This document shows, in pieces, positions 2,479 to 56,852 of a DNA stretch of 64,000 bases (the first letter of the stretch is position 1; each line of letters opens with the position of its first letter). Location: positions 28,768,001 through 28,832,000 of the forward strand of contig OZ320322.1 in the NCBI GenBank assembly GCA_976226885.1. Direction: 5' to 3'. This DNA comes from Iphione sp. A-MEVVRFRX5 (Eukaryota). A model generated the notes under the pieces. The model saw nothing but the letters and a program-made list of their open reading frames with translations. It did no database searches and was not told the origin of the DNA. Both the position numbers and the translations under genes were made by a program.

Positions 2479-2560
2479 ACTTACCGATACACAACTAATA
2501 CGTAAGGGCTTGTCCAAACGCTTTATTCACTCACCTGAAAATAAATCAATGCAATTCATT
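2479..2560 (-). other. Candidate recursive splice site with 50-nt cryptic RS-exon (2534-2485)
   Basis: Minus strand reads ...TTGATTTATTTTCAG|GTGAGTGAATAAAG...GTGTATCG|GTAAGTC. The acceptor AG (2536-2535) is immediately followed by GTGAGT, and a second donor GTAAGT lies at 2484-2479. The 50-nt exon has stops in all three frames. Confidence 0.5.
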
Positions 2561-2752: not shown

Positions 2753-3752
2753 ATGACTATTTTGATTAAAATTCTTTTTGATGACCTAAATAAAAGTCCC
2801 GATAAATCCTACTGCAGATGTTTTCTCTTATTTAACATTTTATTGTTATGTAGCTTGTGTGTACGTTTTATTGGCGCGATAGCTTCCAGAACCGTATACA
2901 AATCTATTTGTCCGAGAAGAATTTGTCTTAGAGCATAGAAATACTTGTTCCTCACAGATGTCATAAAGAAATTTCCGAAGGTTTGTATACCAAACATTTC
3001 TGGGGAAAAAACAACTTCGTAAAAAATAACGCGTATAGCTGAAGGCGATAGATTTCATGGACGACGCGATTGACAACGCAAGTGTCAAATCATAGAATCA
3101 GAGCTGTCCAAAATTTGACAGAAGAAAATGGGCTGGGGAAAATCTGGAATGCATTTAAGCACCTGAAATTGTAAACGTGTATAGCTTATCTAAAAGCTAC
3201 TTTATCAAAGGAACTTTGTCTAAGTAGTTTGCCTTCGGCTTGTTCTAGTATGCAGATCACGGCATGGCCTGCCAGAATATGACCATTACTTGCCCCGAGC
3301 CTCCAAACAGAGAAAACCGCTAACGGATGCGGGTCCCTCTCAGCATCGGTAGCACACAACATTGCCCTGAGCAACTGGCGGCGCCGGAGAGTAGCTCCGA
3401 ACAGCTCTCAACGACTCGCCGAACACATCTCAGAGCAAATCCATAGCGCTGGAGTAGAGATCCGACTCGGAAGACATCATGAACATCGCTTGTAGCAGCC
3501 GTCGAGTACATCTAAATGTCAAGGCGACCCCTAGGGAGTGTTTCGTAATGTTTTCCTCGCGGAAGTATTAGCAAAAAGGCACGTCGGATATCTGTAGGTG
3601 GATGAATGGCGGGAAGACGTAGAAGTGTTTGTAAAGAAAATGTGGGGAAATTGTTTGCAGGTACACCGTGAGAACTTCGAGTCCTGGTGGAAAGCTGGTC
3701 TACATTGGCACAGCACATCCCGATTCCTGTTTACTCTGGGAGATTCTTCAAG

Positions 3753-3816
3753 TCTGTCTGGCCACCTGTCTGTCTGTCTGCCTGTCTCTCTCTATCTCTT
3801 TTTCTCTCTGGCCACC

Positions 3817-3890
<74 letters not shown>

Positions 3891-3912
3891 CCCCCCCCTC
3901 TCTCTCTCTCTC
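3753..3912. repeat. Compound microsatellite (TCTG)n/(TC)n with an internal 50-bp-period duplication
   Basis: TCTGGCCACCTGTCTGTCTGTCTG occurs at 3757 and again at 3807, followed by (TCTG)n and (TC)n runs. Confidence 0.95.
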
Positions 3913-4571
3913 ATCCGACCTCCCTCTCAATGTCCATTTCGTGACCGGAGTATATGTACATGTATCTCGTAATGAATTACGCATTTCCCAGTGCGTTATG
4001 ACTCTTGTATACGAGGGTACCATTTATCATTTGTGGAGGTGGTTGAATGAATATAATGTCCTTTCACTAATGCAGTGCGGTCCATTCAAGCGACGTCGGA
4101 CCAGAATCTGCTTCGGCACCGCGCGGAATACAGATTGGGAAATAAATGTCGGAATCTAGGCGGCAGAATAGACTGGCAGATAATGTGCTCAATTTGTGCG
4201 GCCACTGCCGGTGAGAATAGATGGAATGACTAACAATGCGCGGATGAAGCCTTCCGGTTGTAATCGGAGTGCGGGGAACCGGCTTGTTACATGGCTTGTC
4301 GTCTTAGAGCAGTTGTAGTAGAGCAGCACCTGGTGAAGAGCGCCTAGCGCCGATGATAATCGCCGCAGCGTAGGGGCAAGTAACGCAAGCCAGGAGATCA
4401 CCACGTCCTTTTAAAAAAAACGGAAGGAGAGAACGATAGGACAAGATGTGTGATTGGACCTTGTGGTACGCCGCGTGTAGCAAAGGGGAAGTAAATATGC
4501 ACTGTACTGTTTAACAGGCGAGATATGTGTGAGCAACTTGCAACCGTGTCGATGAATGTTACTGTTAAGTC

Positions 4572-15917: not shown

Positions 15918-16083
15918 NNNNNNNNNNNNNNNNNNNNNNNNNNNNNNNNNNNNNNNNNNNNNNNNNNNNNNNNNNNNNNNNNNNNNNNNNNNNNNNNNNN
16001 NNNNNNNNNNNNNNNNNNNNNNNNNNNNNNNNNNNNNNNNNNNNNNNNNNNNNNNNNNNNNNNNNNNNNNNNNNNNNNNNNNN
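15918..16083. other. Assembly gap (166 N)
   Basis: Run of N characters. Confidence 1.
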
Positions 16084-43713: not shown

Positions 43714-44199
43714 AGAGCAGAGACCATCGCAAGTCCAGAGGCCAAAAGGCAAGAAATCAATGGAAGCTCCAGCGAAGCCTTGTTGGTATTGAACATTAAG
43801 CCTGCTAATCGGTTGTGCTCTAAAATACGGAATTATATGATCACTGTTAACACTCCTCCTGGCAGGGATTATATAAACAGTATTCTTCCCGAGGCTAATA
43901 CCATCAACGCCGACTTGTTTCCACCTTTGAAGGACGCCTCGAAACTGGAAACCAATTTGATTAGGAATCAGAAGGGTGTGCTCTCATTTAATCATATCTC
44001 GGCGTGAAGAACCTGACAAGTGTTACAACACAGAACATCAAAAGCGCCGCTTTCTTATCGGTCTGTTTGCTGCCGCGATTGGAAAAACAAATGGAAGCCA
44101 CTATGACTGAGTTTCAAAAGGGCTTCAAGTTGCTGGCTTTTCAGCGTTTAGTAGTGGGCATAAGAACACATGGCGTTGACAATTTCGATTAAAGCCGGA

Positions 44200-44640
44200 G
44201 CAATAGGAGAAACAATGCGATTTTCAGGGCGGGGTAAGATGATCGGCCGTCGATCTGTGTTAATCCCTGAATGCAATCACAGCGACACGGTGGCCGGCGC
44301 GACAAGGAGATAACCACATCGACTTCAAAGCAGATCAAAGAGATACCACACGATTAGCCCGCGCATGCGCGACAATCACGTGACTTTCATTTATTAATTT
44401 CCACGTAATTATCGGCGTGGCGCAGGCGCGTCCCTCCATCGGCGCGATAACGGCGGACGCCGCTAAAGTTTCCGCCCGAGAGGCGACGGCGCGGTGGTCG
44501 TTTCCACGCGACAGGAAACGTTCACAAATCGCACGTAATGGCAACGAGAAGTGGTGCTAGAGGCGGGAAGAGCCGCATTAGTATCTCGTATATATCGGCG
44601 GGATATGATAGGTCAGGTGTTCTTCGATGAGAGGCGGACC
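44200..44640. promoter_or_regulatory. CpG island with a perfect NRF1 site and tandem TCF/LEF-type sites
   Basis: Dense CpG, GCGCATGCGC at 44361-44370, TTCAAAG at 44324 and ATCAAAG at 44334, and CACGTG nearby. Confidence 0.45.
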
Positions 44641-46491
44641 AGTAAATACTCATGGGCGCTATGTTCCGAGAGACAGAATGTAATTAGATCTGACACCAAG
44701 AAGGACGTTTTTCATCATTACGATTGGCTGTCTTTCTCTATTCTCGCGACTATTGTCTATAAACTATGGCCACATGTACGCACTTAGGGGAAATTAATGC
44801 CGTAATCCCTGGTGATAGAACGAATGCTTGTACACTAATCATGAGGTCAGATGATTTCTTTCTATCTGAGCCATCCGAAACTTTTGAATTGATTAAAACC
44901 TGCAGATCACTTCTTATTGTTGGAATTTGATGCAAGTCGCTAATGACAAAGAGAGAGGCGTACTACAACAGGTCCTGACTAAATATTTTGCGGATATGTC
45001 CTTGCTTTCAGAGGCAGGGATCAACTATTGTATTACATGTATGCAATTCGGTGGTGCACATGAGATTCAATAAGCATTTGAGGTTCGCCTGTGATAGATC
45101 TGTTGGATCATGTAGGAAGCCTTCCCATGTACACGTTTAACCGTTTCATTTGCATTGCCATGACATCTGAGAATGACCTGAAACGTACTAGAACCTAACC
45201 TGTCTGTTCATAGTGCATATGTCAAGGTAAGCCTGACTCAGATCATGCGTCAACCGACTTTTGTCCAACCAGATGCATGGGCATGACGGCTGTCAATTTG
45301 ATTTCAACAGCAGCAGTTCTCTACCTGGGCATTTTGAGGTCATTGTGTCTAGTGTAGTAAAACATACAGTCTGCAACATGAGGGTACGGGGATTTGGCAA
45401 TTAAGATAAAGCGGACACCATTGTCCGAAACGTGTACGTGGAAGAGCTGCCTTCTTCCTAATGCCTCCCATCGGTCCATTTGCGCCAAAAGTCACATCCC
45501 ATAGAGGATTACTTTGCAGTGTAGATACGGGCATTGATATAGCTTTGCCGTACGACATGTATATATACATGTACATGTATATAATATTGTTTATGGGTCA
45601 TGATTGTTATTTACTTTTCCTATTATTTCATATCTTCCATATTGTTCCCCTGGGTATTCCGAATTATACACCTTGACATTAGTACGACTCCAGTGGCTGA
45701 TACTGGCAATGAAGCAATACGCACTTTCAATGACCTTTCGCTCCCAATTCAAGGCAGCTCTAGATGCCACAAAGGACATCCTGAATTGATTCAGTCGAGA
45801 CGGCGCATACGTTATGAATCGGTACAACTGAGGTCAACTCAGTTGGCCTTATGAAACCATGGCCATACTCTTCGCAGAACAACATTATGAGTCGTTCCAG
45901 AAAAGCCCATTAACACAACCATGAGGTGAGGTCGCGTACAGCTCCATAATTTGGACATCTGGGTAAATGCTCACCATCCGTTGTCTTATCCAAGTTATAT
46001 TTTATACATGTATATTTGTTAACATGTACCGTACACTGACGGAGACATAGGTACACAGATGTACAGTGTACATTTGGATTATCATTTCCTTCCGAACTGA
46101 CCAGCAATGCTCTACACTTGTTTTGAATGAATTTAATAGATAGATACCCCTAGTGATAGGTTCTGTTCCTAATGGCTGAGGCCCACGTAGTACTTACTAA
46201 TGAATCGATAAATACTTAACAGAATAGTCATGCTACTAACTCTGTGATACATGCGTATGTATTTTCCTTTCTTAGATTTTTTAAAAATATGTTTTGCCAC
46301 TTTGACAATAGATATCCCACGTGATATTAGTATCAAGTATGACCAGGTAAGTGTTTCGTCAGCATCTAAGTTTTTTTTCAAAGTCTGGTCCCCGCTCTGC
46401 CTTTTTCTGCGTTCTGATCATGACAGCTATCTCATACCATCTTTATGATCTTTTGACATGGACATATCGATTTGGTGATATACAAAAAGTA

Positions 46492-46554
46492 ACTTACCAC
46501 AGCAGGGGGACGTCTCAATTATTAACAGGACTCACCTGGAAAGAGACAAATATG
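46492..46554 (-). other. Candidate recursive splice site with 38-nt cryptic RS-exon (46535-46498)
   Basis: Minus strand reads CATATTTGTCTCTTTCCAG|GTGAGTCC...CCTGCTGTG|GTAAGTT. The 38-nt exon has stops in all three frames. Confidence 0.55.
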
Positions 46555-50736: not shown

Positions 50737-50766
50737 GTGAAAGCACAATCCTGTTCAACATCCACA
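50737..50766 (+). other. Candidate 30-nt frame-preserving micro-exon
   Basis: CCCTTCTCCCCCATTCTTTGCAG|GTGAAAGCACAATCCTGTTCAACATCCACA|GTGAGT has a strong acceptor and donor and is open in two frames (VKAQSCSTST or ESTILFNIH). Confidence 0.35.
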
Positions 50767-51259
50767 GTGAGTAGGGGCCTCTTGAGACCATGCAGGGGTA
50801 AGAAAATCCATAATGCTCATACACGATGTACTAACGGTCAGTACAATATGCTCTTTTTGTGTAGAAAGTGTTCCCTCAACGGCTGTTTCCCGATGATACG
50901 GCGACTTACAGAAAAAGCACAAGAATAGGTCTACTGCACTCTTACCAGTTTACTGAGAAAGGATTGTCGGGAGGTTCGTTACCAAGTACATAGATGGCTT
51001 TGAGAGGAGTAAGAACTTTTGCAAAGCCTTCATGAATATGGAGTCCTAACTACACCCCCATGCATTTTATGACCAAATATTCATGATTCCTCGAATAGCT
51101 CCGCCTAGCGAATTATTCCACTGAACAAAAATCTAGTCTTTGAGATTAGAATAGAAAACCTCACCCATGTTGTGTTAACCGTTCGTGGGGTATACATGTG
51201 CACTATAGAGACTCACTTTGGCGCACTTCACACACCTCAACACAATACCGCGGCTAATA

Positions 51260-51700
51260 TGCTATGCGCACGTGAGCAGTTATCGGTCAGGCGCAGCGTG
51301 GGGGAAGGCCAGCCAGTTGACATCAGCAGCGAAAAGTCGGGAACAAAGCTGACCCTGACCGCACCGCGAGGAGACGACGTGGTCGCCGGCGGCGGCGGCG
51401 GCGGCGACCGCGCCACAAAAGCCCGGCCTTGTATCTGGTAATTGCCGTCCACAATGGCCGCCGCCAGGTCGGGGAGAGCAGCGAGCCAGCGACCGCGCCG
51501 CTCACACGCCGCGCACGGGCCGCGTTAAAACCGCGCGGCGATTCGCGCGCGTGCGGGCGGAGGGCGGTGTGAATTATACATGTAAATGCGCATTGAATTG
51601 AGGACAAGAGCGGCGCCGCAAGACCCCGCCGGCGCGCGGACATTAATCTTTTATGGCGGTGTGTGAAAAATCTGATGGTTGCATTATTGTAATTGAATAA
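51260..51700. promoter_or_regulatory. Very CpG-dense island with adjacent homeodomain-type sites
   Basis: (GGC)n at ~51386-51405 and repeated CGCG stretches, then ATTAAT and TTTATGG (51650-51656) and TAATTG. Confidence 0.4.
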
Positions 51701-54700
51701 GCACAATGCGGTAGGGACTGGGGTGGTATAGCGACCTGTGTTACTAGAAGGCTGGAAGACAACCTGTGGCAAAGGATAGGCTGCGGGTTGTTGGAAGGAA
51801 TCTAATGACCACAGGTCAGCCAACAGCATAATGAGATCTAAGGAACCTTATGTACATCATCTAAACGTCAGCTCTGTTTATAAAGAGTGGTTCCTATCCA
51901 ATATCCGAGGCTATGTTGATGGGTAATGCTGCCATTTTCTTTTACTAAAACACGAACTCGGGTTTATTACCTTTACTTTTACCTGGTAATCAAAAGTCTG
52001 TATGATATTTCAGCCTCTATTAAGTCCCCAGCATGATAAGGATAATGGAGATATCAAGGAGTAGTGCAACTGGAAATCTATGGAATATGTCAGCGCTTCT
52101 TTGGCTTTGTAATGCAAGCAATCAACGTCCTGTGTTCGTATGATGAAAGAAGAGAACCAAAGTTAATCAAACGATTGCTTCAAAATACCGAATTCAATGT
52201 GTACTGTTCGAAAGTACTATCGTTCATGAGTCAAAGGTGCTTTGTGTAAGAGTCTCGCCGTATGTCAAAGAGCTTTAATTAAAGCAAGACTATAATACAG
52301 AAATGAAGACATATATTGAAACATCAGCTGGAAACAACACTGGAATACCGCTGCTGAAACCTTTGGAATCGTGTTAGTTTTTATTCTACTTTGGACTTCC
52401 ATAATGTTAATATCCAAAGCGCATTCCTTTTCGTTTCCTAATAGAAACCATATTATAGAACATTTTTGTAGATACTTAGCAATGCTCTATACACCCTAGT
52501 CTGAACCTACTGTAACATGCGAGTGTCTAAGAGAGTGCTGACAAGTGAACAGCAGAACAGATAACAAAAATAGAGAATATGGTTCACTCCAAATACACTA
52601 AAATAGTTATGCATGATGTGATCTTTCTCATATGTGCAACAAGAAAGGGTCTGTTTATTCAGGAAAACATGTTTACTTATATATTTTAGTGTTCACAATA
52701 TCACACAGAATACATAATAGTAGCTGAAAATAGAGTATTGTCTAAACATATGTCTGGTCTGGGGGAAACTGCATAATCCCAACTCCTGCTGTGCCATAGA
52801 TAATAATGATGCAGTTACCCTACAATGCAATACTTATCTGCACAATATAATTCTAAAACAGATCCCCTGCGCAGATCACCTGAAACGGATTACCCTGAGC
52901 CAGATCACTTACAAAATACATGCACACACTACACCATGAGAACAAATCAGGGCCAACACGTATGTAACTGCACTGATATGGAGTCACTTAGCATTGACCA
53001 TATGCTTTAATTGAAAGTATATGGAGCATATTGAAACTTGGTTGTACATATATATACCCCACAGTCTTAAGACCCTGTTCACATGTATCCTATAGGAAAA
53101 TATGTCTATGGGTCCGGAGATGTGGAATACTTCCTGTTTTTTTCTACTTTGTTGCACAAATATGCATACCAGATGTCTTTTTCCGTAGAAAATCCATCAC
53201 CAGTGGATTTTGAATACGGATACATGTCCTAATCCATTTTGAAATGGAGGCATATGAACATATTAGTAGAATTACTATGAGTGGTTGAAATACATCCATG
53301 GAGCCGTAACCATTTTAGGAAAATATGGATACAAGTGAATACAGTCTTATTCTGACTCAAAGTACAGGTAATACATGGGATAAATCTGCCAGATCATACC
53401 AAACAAATTAGGGGCAGAGGGACTGATGTTCTGCACTAACCTTTAAGGTGATGCGAATTTTCTTATGGGCTATCACTTACTGGACTAATGCTTCACAAAG
53501 GTAGACTGTGAGCTGGTGGCGGCACGCTATGGTCATGGTGCGAGCCATCGTCAGTTTGCTATATGCCTCGATTAAACGCCATCTGTTAAATGGGTCGTCT
53601 TTGCAGTTCTTCGATTGTTACCACAAGTGTCTACACGCTTCAGCGTTTCCATCGCTTTAAATAGTGGCTTTATTAAAGCGATATCCTTTTTAGAAATGGA
53701 TTCTTACTTATATCATCAGTTTACGCCAAATAAAAGCTTATTCTGATTCTCCTAGAAATCTTAGTCGAATACGTTGGATTCTGAAACACAACACGGCATG
53801 CCTAGTGCACTTCCATACCGGTGCTGCACTAACGAACATGGCATTCTGACAATTTTTGTGTCAGCGGTAATCTGTCATTCGGCTGAGACCTGACTGTAAT
53901 TGCTGTATTCATTTTCTCAAATGAGAGCAACACCAGGCAATAGTTTCTCTGTGAAAATAAAATCGTGTTTACAGGTATTTCCATTTCACTGTGGCTCTGG
54001 TTGGATCAACATTGGAAGAGCATATTGAACATTACTAATCTCCAGAAATGTAAATTGTTCTCAAGAGGGAATTCCAGATTATAAAATATTCAGGACAGGA
54101 ACACTCCTGTACAAATGAAAATTGATAACTTCAAGAGAAAAGAAGGAATAGTTGATGCAAATTCAGTCTTGCCATGCGGGCTTAAAAAATCCATATAATT
54201 AGCTCCTGTGCTTCCTACAATAAATACTGCTAAGAGGATTATTGTTCATATAATTCATTCAAAGAACTTTGGCAGAAACGTTTTAACCTGTTCATTGAAG
54301 GGAGGAAAACGTCATCACGGTGTTTAGTACCGTATTATTTCGTGTAATTCAGTACATGACTATAGCTTTATATCGAGGTTTACCCCCACAATATTACTTA
54401 CTGCAGAACAGTATACACTACCTTTTAGCAATATTACTGTCATTTTACGGACACTTGTTGGTAATTCCTTCCCATTTACATGTATGTATGTTTCTCACTT
54501 TAAGGCTTCTGCTCTATAAGGAAAGAACTTCATAGATGGCTTGTCCTGTTCAGTGTTGGTAAATTGGAGACACGGTGCGGATGCAGGCTCGTGATGATGA
54601 CTCGCGCTCCTACCTTTAACTTACATGGACATGATGATATCGATGCATAATATATAGTAAAGAGACCAAGCATCAAAAGGTCAGAAAGATGGCCAATGGG

Positions 54701-55647
54701 CTAGGATGTCACCAAAATGAGCCAACAGGAGAGAACAATTGTGTCTACAACATGGTTAACGACTGGCACCTTTACGCCGCCGGCTCTGCTTATTCCGGGT
54801 ATAACGAGGGGAGATGTGGGTTAACTAGAAATACCCGGAGGCTGTCCATGCTTCTGGATGATCATATGAGACATATGAGCGGTGAATGTGTATGTAGCCG
54901 GGGTTGTGCCGTGGGGGGGGGGGGCTGGGGAGGACGTTAGTGGTAAAAGGAGAATATCTCATTAACAAGTAGTGTTTACAGGGAGCCGAGGTAAATGTTG
55001 GGAGGGGCTATCAGGGTGAGCACAGCTCCACATGCTCATTAATGAGACGGATATCACATCAGGCGACGCACACCGCACTTCACTGCATACTGCTCTGTGG
55101 ACTAACAAGGTACACGCCTGCCCGTAACTAATACAAAAGATGCCTATCTGCGACAGGCGACAGGTGGGTGATGAGTTTTTTTTTTCTTTCTCTCTTCCAC
55201 CGGATATTCGAACACGCCCTGACAAACCAATATATGCAGACAATGGAAGAAGCAATACAAGAAGACTTTCTCCACACGTATGCACATAATTTTTTTTTCA
55301 AATCAATTCTCCCTGTGTTACTCCCCCTCCCCCCTTGCACCGTTGGGTCGGAGTCACATGCCAAATACATTAACCTCAGCTCGGAGAAGACTAATTAATG
55401 ACATTGTTAGCGAGTTATTCTGTCAAAAATAAAAATTCCCGGACTATTTCCTGCAATGCGTGGGGACGACAGTAAGAAGAATGGGCCCGGAGGCGGTGTC
55501 TCCCTGCACTGGTTTAATTGCTGCGGCATCTGGCCGACATGGGGCCGCCCACCGCCAAGAATTGTAAAAACAGGAAATTAATCGTGCCCGAGCTGGAACG
55601 GTGGAGACCGCTGTACAACGGGTAGCCGTGTTGGTGGTGCTGTTGGT

Positions 55648-55662
55648 AATAGTAGTAGTGGC

Positions 55663-55747
<85 letters not shown>

Positions 55748-55758
55748 CTAGTAGTAGT
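55648..55758. repeat. (TAG)n microsatellite, ~30 units
   Basis: Direct observation. Confidence 0.95.
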
Positions 55759-56525
55759 GGCCGTGCAGGTCTAGGCAGAATAACATTACGATAATACACG
55801 CGCTGCGAAAGGGCCAGTGAGATGCCACTGCCAGCGGCGACACCGTACAATGCCTGTCCTGATGTCCTATAATGCTGGGATTGGACACCTTGTATTGTTT
55901 GGCAGAAGCATACATGAGGCTACACCACCAGGCTACTTGTACCGAGTGCGGCTACACTAAGATTAAGATGATACTGAGTTGTTTACAATTGGCTTCTCGG
56001 TTGAGCAACAGTAGAGCACTAGATTAACGTTCTCCAACAATAGTAAACACACGTACTATTTTTCACTATCGGACCTGTCTGTTAGATAGTCCAGGAGTAC
56101 ATATACCGATGGACCCTGGCAAGGTATACTGGCAAAGGACTGATCATTCCTCATTTCAGTCTTTCACTCGTTCAGTTTTTAGTTTGCTTCTGTTATCTTT
56201 AAGCTGGTCCTGTCATGTCCAGGCTTTAGACTCATTCGGTTTCTCTTGGACGCCTTTCCATATTTTCCATATGTTATTTGGTCGCTACCTTTTTACCTCC
56301 CGGGGTTTTACCCAACCCTCTCCGTCTAGGTCTCTAAGCCCCTGGCCCTATATTTCTTCTCAATACTCTACCCCCAACAGCTTTATTTCTTAGAAGTCCT
56401 GTATAGTTATTTGCATTAATATCTATTGCATGTGCCTTGTATCACCACCTCTCTCTCCTTGTCCTCTTCTATTCCTCGATCCGCGGCTTCCTGTCTGTTC
56501 CTCTCTGTCCTCGTCGTCGTCTTCC

Positions 56526-56589
56526 CCCTCCTCCTCCTCCTCCTCCTCCTCCTCCTCCTCCTCCTCCTCCTCCTCCTCCTCCTCCTCCT
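56526..56589. repeat. (CCT)n microsatellite, ~21 units
   Basis: Direct observation. Confidence 0.95.
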
Positions 56590-56741
56590 CTTCCCTATAC
56601 CTACTTGTCCTGGTATCTCACAGGTGCTCCATCTTAATCCAGGAGCCGGTCGTCATGACGGCCTCCCGACACATTACCGTGACATTTACCCGGGGCTCAG
56701 CGGTGTGAGAGCCGCCACGTGCGAGCTGCTCATCTCTGCAG

Positions 56742-56852
56742 GAGCCGCTCAGCACACAACCATGAGCAGTTCATCCGGCTAAAAATCGCTGCCGAGGAAA
56801 TCGCCAGTAGGCATCGCAGCCCTGAGCGACAGCGGGCGACAACGGGGACGAG
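56742..56852 (+). CDS. Candidate symmetric internal exon, unknown product (SRSAHNHEQFIRLKIAAEEIASRHRSPERQRATTGT)
   Basis: The 111 nt between CTCATCTCTGCAG| and GAG|GTAAAT have a single open frame, in phase 2/2, with a charged helical-looking peptide. No family is recognised and it lies inside a CpG island. Confidence 0.3.

Follow-up and report, generated by a model that had tools for sequence, protein, structure and literature searches.

Signals for two splice donors and one splice acceptor lie close together on the minus strand of a 64-kb stretch of DNA (C22:28768001-28832000; the window, meaning the whole stretch that was analysed), and the acceptor is fused directly to the first of the donors. 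This raises the question whether the locus is a recursive splice site that serves the stepwise removal of a long intron, or whether it is an ordinary short exon, a regulated switch or a coincidence of splice-like words. In known systems a ratchet point of the form (Y)nNCAG/GTAAGT (the slash marks the splice junction) opens a short (~50 nt), out-of-frame cryptic RS-exon that is followed by a downstream donor (PMC8605326; PMC5126111). Our analysis suggests that the locus is probably a recursive splice site that opens a cryptic RS-exon of 38 nt, placed in a long minus-strand intron that most probably is a 5' intron of a semaphorin-5-like gene. The features on which the argument draws are collected in Table 1.

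Table 1. Features in and around the window and related loci elsewhere in the assembly. Plain numbers are window positions; C1, C2, C4 and C22 denote genome coordinates.
Feature	Position	Strand	Basis or remark
Fused motif TTTGTCTCTTTCCAG/GTGAGT (TTTGTCTCTTTCCAG itself 46550..46536)	46550-46530	-	
Candidate recursive site, 3' splice site: pyrimidine tract TTTGTCTCTTTCC + AG	46536..46550	-	sequence read
Regenerated 5' splice site (ratchet-point donor) GTGAGT, immediately 3' of the AG	46530..46535	-	sequence read; genome-wide pattern match
Candidate cryptic RS-exon, 38 nt, non-triplet, stops in 3/3 frames, without ATG	46498..46535	-	
Downstream 5' splice site G/GTAAGT, which would define the RS-exon	46492..46497	-	sequence read and pattern matches
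Second site of the same layout: ATTGATTTATTTTCAG/GTGAGT, 50-nt interval 2534..2485, GTAAGT 2484..2479	2479..2550	-	C22:28770479-28770541:-
CAG/GTAAGT word	46344-46352	+	188 bp from the candidate site
Stretches of highest CpG o/e	43750-45250; 50750-52250		1.2-1.3 and ~1.15, respectively, vs a window median of 0.79
CTG/CAG-type microsatellite, long	55580-56780		poly-Leu or poly-Ser ORFs on both strands
CT/GA-rich simple repeat	3600-4160		
N run	15918-16083		
Semaphorin-5-like gene	C22:28715540 (C-terminal exon) to ~28745460	-	exon-by-exon tblastn and genome search
Two Sema exons	C22:28739282-28740678	-	Sema-domain genome search
Most 5' mapped semaphorin-5-like exon, encoding ...QQDPAVHVYRQPNIVQYTELSVDIPRQQLIVGAK	C22:28745350 to ~28745460	-	
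Example clusters of layout matches	C1:129.25-129.48 Mb; C1:132.34-133.01 Mb; C2:11.39-11.54 Mb; C4:92.41-92.83 Mb		
Sema exons of the paralogous semaphorin	C1:132540228-132553044	+	gene from ~132.54 Mb
Layout matches upstream of the paralogous semaphorin	C1:132339539; C1:132453827	+	200 and 86 kb upstream of its mapped exons

The motif is observed directly in the sequence and agrees with the juxtaposed (Y)nNCAG/GTRAGT consensus of ratchet points, and a G/GTAAGT donor 38 nt past the AG closes a short exon of the kind (~50 nt) that accompanies them. The GTGAGT (46535-46530) is separated by 32 bases from the second donor GTAAGT (46497-46492). Both the regenerated and the downstream donor had been described in the original prediction, together with an exon of non-triplet length with stops in all frames, and reading the sequence bore this out, as the interval measures 38 nt and has a stop in each frame. 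The span proposed for the whole arrangement, 46492-46554, holds the motif but extends four surplus bases too far at the upstream end. The acceptor had further been called optimal, which is accurate for the pyrimidines (12 of the 14 positions preceding the AG) and for the AG-free zone, with 47 nt to the closest upstream AG, but not for the branch point: within the 70 nt upstream of the acceptor no yUnAy or TNAY motif was found, just an A-rich stretch. By U1 complementarity, the two donors of the candidate RS-exon look about equal in strength, with continuous U1 pairing from -1 to +6 in the second donor (GTG/GTAAGT) and a G at +3 in the rebuilt one (GTGAGT). The 651 bp surrounding the candidate site are single copy according to a whole-genome search, and a repeat or transposon origin of the site was rejected on this ground.

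Near the candidate site, the plus strand carries a CAG/GTAAGT word, whose minus-strand reading, ACTTACCTG, is identical to the 5' end sequence of U1 snRNA. It has neither a pyrimidine tract nor a partner donor and Rfam returned no U1 at this place, so we rejected it as a splice feature and regard it as probably a coincidence.

In order to judge how far such signals exceed expectation, patterns were searched across the 1.18-Gb assembly, with the same pattern read backwards as control. The short word YAG/GTRAGT occurs twice per strand in the 64-kb window. Genome-wide, Y9-AG/GTRAGT alone was found 390 times compared to 317 in the control (1.23-fold), and most such words are therefore due to chance. 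The picture is different once a second GTRAGT is placed at a gap of 17-47 nt. Under this layout, Y6-AG/GTRAGT yielded 129 matches vs 43 in the control and Y9-AG/GTRAGT yielded 64 vs 3, an excess of about 20 times. The candidate site is one of these 64 matches (C22:28814492-28814546:-). A stricter pattern, Y5AG/GTGAGT N{17,47} GTAAGT, gave 48 matches vs 7 in the control in 1.18 Gb, and these include the candidate as well as the second site of the window.

The enrichment falls across gap bins. At a gap of 48-78 nt the Y9 layout gave 28 matches vs 9, much of which consisted of tandem repeats, transposon copies and re-hits of the 17-47 bin, and at 217-247 nt the Y6 layout gave 44 vs 25, with about half of the 44 being tandem repeats or repeated copies. 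The nearby second donor is therefore distance-specific, corresponding to RS-exons of ~26-60 nt, among which 38 nt is mid-range. The surplus of Y9-AG/GTRAGT over its control (73) is close to the number of sites carrying a nearby donor (64), which fits a working unit that includes exon definition. Expressed as a fraction, 64 of the 390 Y9AG/GTRAGT sites (16%) carry a nearby donor, vs ~1% by chance. A G at -1 is seen in 27 of the 64 second donors when these are counted by eye, about twice the base frequency.

Two further observations were made on the genome-wide matches. In about one fifth of the fused sites the donor reads on as GTRAGTACC. Tandem repeats with CAG/GTGAGT in their unit, at C11:7984339-7985029 (-) and C13:16208424-16209172 (+), inflate the raw counts, and any genome-wide census of the layout needs to have such repeats removed.

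The layout matches are not scattered independently of strand. They were observed to group on one strand across 100-400 kb (Table 1), and among neighbouring Y6-layout pairs no more than 500 kb apart we counted by hand ~21 on the same strand vs 1 on opposite strands. The window follows this pattern, as the second site lies 44 kb downstream of the candidate in transcript direction and on the same minus strand. Its 50-nt interval is likewise non-triplet with stops in all frames. Both sites belong to the 48 stricter matches, with no further C22 match inside 10 Mb, and by a rough estimate 48 random sites should yield ~0.04 same-strand pairs genome-wide that are no more than 44 kb apart. The layout was found neither on the plus strand of the window nor on either strand of the 200 kb of sampled flanks. 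Taken as a prediction from sequence, a recursive site with an RS-exon thus gains statistical support from the layout count of 64 vs 3, the one-strand clusters and the second site 44 kb off.

Some clustered sites resemble each other beyond the consensus, namely C2:11429913/11455556/11536329 and C4:92405800/92818224/92831708; the same holds for C4:10960473 vs C4:116519178. This likeness suggests duplication of entire RS modules.

What the window itself encodes was assessed by several scans. Rfam and tRNA scans of the 64 kb returned nothing, and a Pfam search of stop-to-stop ORFs with a minimum length of 62 aa (50 aa at 42-51 kb) returned just one borderline match to DUF3915, from which we judge that no gene and no transposon protein can be recognised in the window. 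When AATAAA, GTRAGT and acceptor-like words were counted on each strand of the window, they gave no hint of minus-strand transcription. The two stretches of highest CpG o/e flank the candidate site, one downstream and one upstream on the minus strand; if they are unmethylated islands, as may be the case, they would be candidates for promoters. As promoter hints, the CpG o/e peaks of the window were uninformative. Simple sequence is present in the form of a long CTG/CAG-type microsatellite and a CT/GA-rich repeat, and there is one N run (Table 1).

A candidate host gene is observed in the neighbourhood. The flanks were sampled over 200 kb in alternating 10-kb blocks on both sides of the window. 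On the right, only a reverse-transcriptase fragment was found. On the left, Pfam searches of long ORFs revealed plus-strand Sushi exons and, on the minus strand, a TSP1 exon resembling SEMA5B, and a Sema-domain search of the genome added two Sema exons on the minus strand. A protein search with one of the Sema exons retrieved full-length semaphorins, including a semaphorin-5A-like protein of Lingula anatina and a protein of Owenia fusiformis, which also points to a spiralian as the probable host. By reference to homologous proteins, the exons were then mapped singly. They make up a compact minus-strand semaphorin-5-like gene with a Sema domain, a PSI and several TSP1 repeats, and with introns of ~0.3-2.5 kb. 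The Sushi-repeat gene, on the plus strand, lies farther left than the semaphorin-5-like gene. The candidate site shares the strand of this gene and lies 69 kb upstream of the mapped exon nearest to the 5' end, and we infer that transcription from this gene would run across the window.

A strong pyrimidine tract precedes the most 5' mapped exon, which encodes ...QQDPAVHVYRQPNIVQYTELSVDIPRQQLIVGAK and contains no in-frame ATG. The first ~45 codons of the gene (signal peptide and DFRxISYEDL-type motif) were not found in the sequence read, which comprised 0.7 kb upstream of the QQDPAVHVYRQPNIVQYTELSVDIPRQQLIVGAK exon, the block 28748001-28758000, the whole window and the right flank as sampled. 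In this search, N-terminal sequences from the Lingula and Owenia proteins and from two further full-length homologues served as tblastn queries, and regular expressions were used for the DFRxISYEDL-type motif. Two stretches between gene and window, C22:28746179-28748000 and 28758001-28768000, which together account for 11.8 kb, lie outside the sequence read. As ~45 N-terminal codons and the ATG are missing from the mapped exons, at least one further 5' exon is predicted upstream. If the signal-peptide exon and a promoter lay within these 11.8 kb, the window would fall 5' of the gene, barring a distal promoter.

A paralogous semaphorin is encoded on the plus strand of C1. Two layout matches are found upstream of its mapped exons on the sense strand (Table 1), and the paralogue with its upstream layout sites forms an arrangement parallel to that of the window.

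According to the published model, exon definition permits the upstream exon to be joined, after which the rebuilt donor normally beats the donor of the RS-exon and the cryptic exon is removed (PMC8605326; PMC5126111). We derive the steps at the candidate site from this model. At first, the acceptor at 46536 would be recognised together with the downstream donor at 46497 as a short exon. Joining of the upstream exon to 46535 would then rebuild a donor, consisting of the end of that exon and GTGAGT, and this donor would remove the remaining intron, probably through the second site at 2534. The 38 nt would normally be absent from the mRNA, since the rebuilt donor would remove them together with the intron.

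How probable is it that these signals have another origin? Splice-like words could arise by chance in untranscribed or antisense DNA and leave a site without function, and several of our results point in this direction. The fused motif without a second donor is only 1.23-fold above its control, an upstream exon was not located in the sequence read, the signals in the window show no strand asymmetry and a branch-point consensus is absent within the 70 nt upstream of the acceptor; all of these also count against the recursive reading. The layout as a whole argues otherwise, as its ratio of 64 to 3 leaves only ~5-8% of such sites to be expected by chance, and the occurrence of two of the 48 stricter matches 44 kb apart on one strand contrasts with the ~0.04 pairs expected genome-wide. 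Both sites also lie on the strand of the neighbouring long gene. We hold a chance origin to be quite improbable, and we rate it somewhat above the 5-8% false-positive rate of the class because the intron itself is a prediction. If the signals are functional, they might alternatively specify an ordinary short exon, either an alternative exon of 38 nt in the 5' UTR or a simple poison cassette exon, that is spliced non-recursively and begins with GTGAGT by accident. A plain exon does not predict that the AG-GTRAGT fusion goes with the short-exon layout (16% vs ~1%), and the second site in the window displays the identical fusion. We therefore regard this explanation as rather improbable, despite the fact that a good acceptor followed after 38 nt by a good donor is enough to define a possible exon, that a 5' UTR tolerates stops in all frames and the interval contains no ATG, and that the site may lie 5' of the start codon.

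The original prediction had gone further and proposed an NMD-coupled switch, in which competition between the donors directs part of the transcripts to NMD via inclusion of the 38-nt poison exon. This is the published donor-competition model restated, which PMC5126111 describes for vertebrate RS-exons. The two donors, about equal by U1 complementarity, would make partial inclusion conceivable, and an interval of non-triplet length with stops in 3/3 frames is what such a switch would use. A premature stop would, however, arise only in an intron within the coding region, and the search of the sequence read did not reveal the first coding exon. Since the cryptic RS-exons of flies are usually out of frame and yet skipped (PMC8605326), out-of-frame stops are no evidence of regulation, and we consider a regulated switch unlikely. 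Recursive splicing through an RS-exon that is normally skipped remains our preferred reading, and we infer that the site would be used in this manner.

The preferred reading can be compared to two known systems. With the ratchet points of Drosophila (Burnette 2005; Duff 2015; Joseph, Kondo & Lai 2018; Joseph et al. 2021, PMC8605326) the candidate shares the fused (Y)nNCAG/GTRAGT core and an exon-like interval closed by a downstream donor, which is ~50 nt long in the fly and 38 nt here and out of frame in both. As in Drosophila, several sites are found on one strand in a gene-poor stretch next to a long neuronal gene. The present host, in contrast, is not an insect, its best protein matches being from an annelid and a brachiopod, and while the Drosophila set was defined by RNA sawtooth patterns, junction reads and cross-species conservation, the sites reported here are predicted from sequence. 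The second system is the "binary splicing switch" of vertebrate RS-exons (Sibley 2015, summarised in PMC5126111; Blazquez 2018, PMC6224609), which comprises exon definition, donor competition and premature stops if the RS-exon is kept. This is exactly the mechanism put forward in the original prediction. The vertebrate cryptic cases reported are few, come from brain genes with very long introns and were discovered from RNA, whereas sequence statistics led to the present ones.

The mechanism as such is already known from Drosophila and vertebrates, and the candidate site would add a new example. A full-text literature search returned no substantial paper on recursive splicing in molluscs and none tying recursive splicing to semaphorins. 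When all observations are read jointly, it is possible, and we put this forward tentatively, that recursive splicing operates throughout this genome via obligatory short RS-exons (~26-60 nt), with at least 60 strict sites in same-strand clusters, and thus outside insects and vertebrates. The semaphorin-5-like gene would then be a case in which a 5' intron spanning at least 69 kb is divided by two sites, and its near-equal donors might permit regulated inclusion of a poison exon.

If the candidate site is used, the genes whose long introns are removed stepwise would come to include a guidance gene, semaphorin-5-like, from an invertebrate that is not a model organism. Such use, along with the genome-wide count of 64 vs 3, would further argue that the design of a ratchet point combined with an RS-exon is older than the major bilaterian split and not a speciality of flies or vertebrates.
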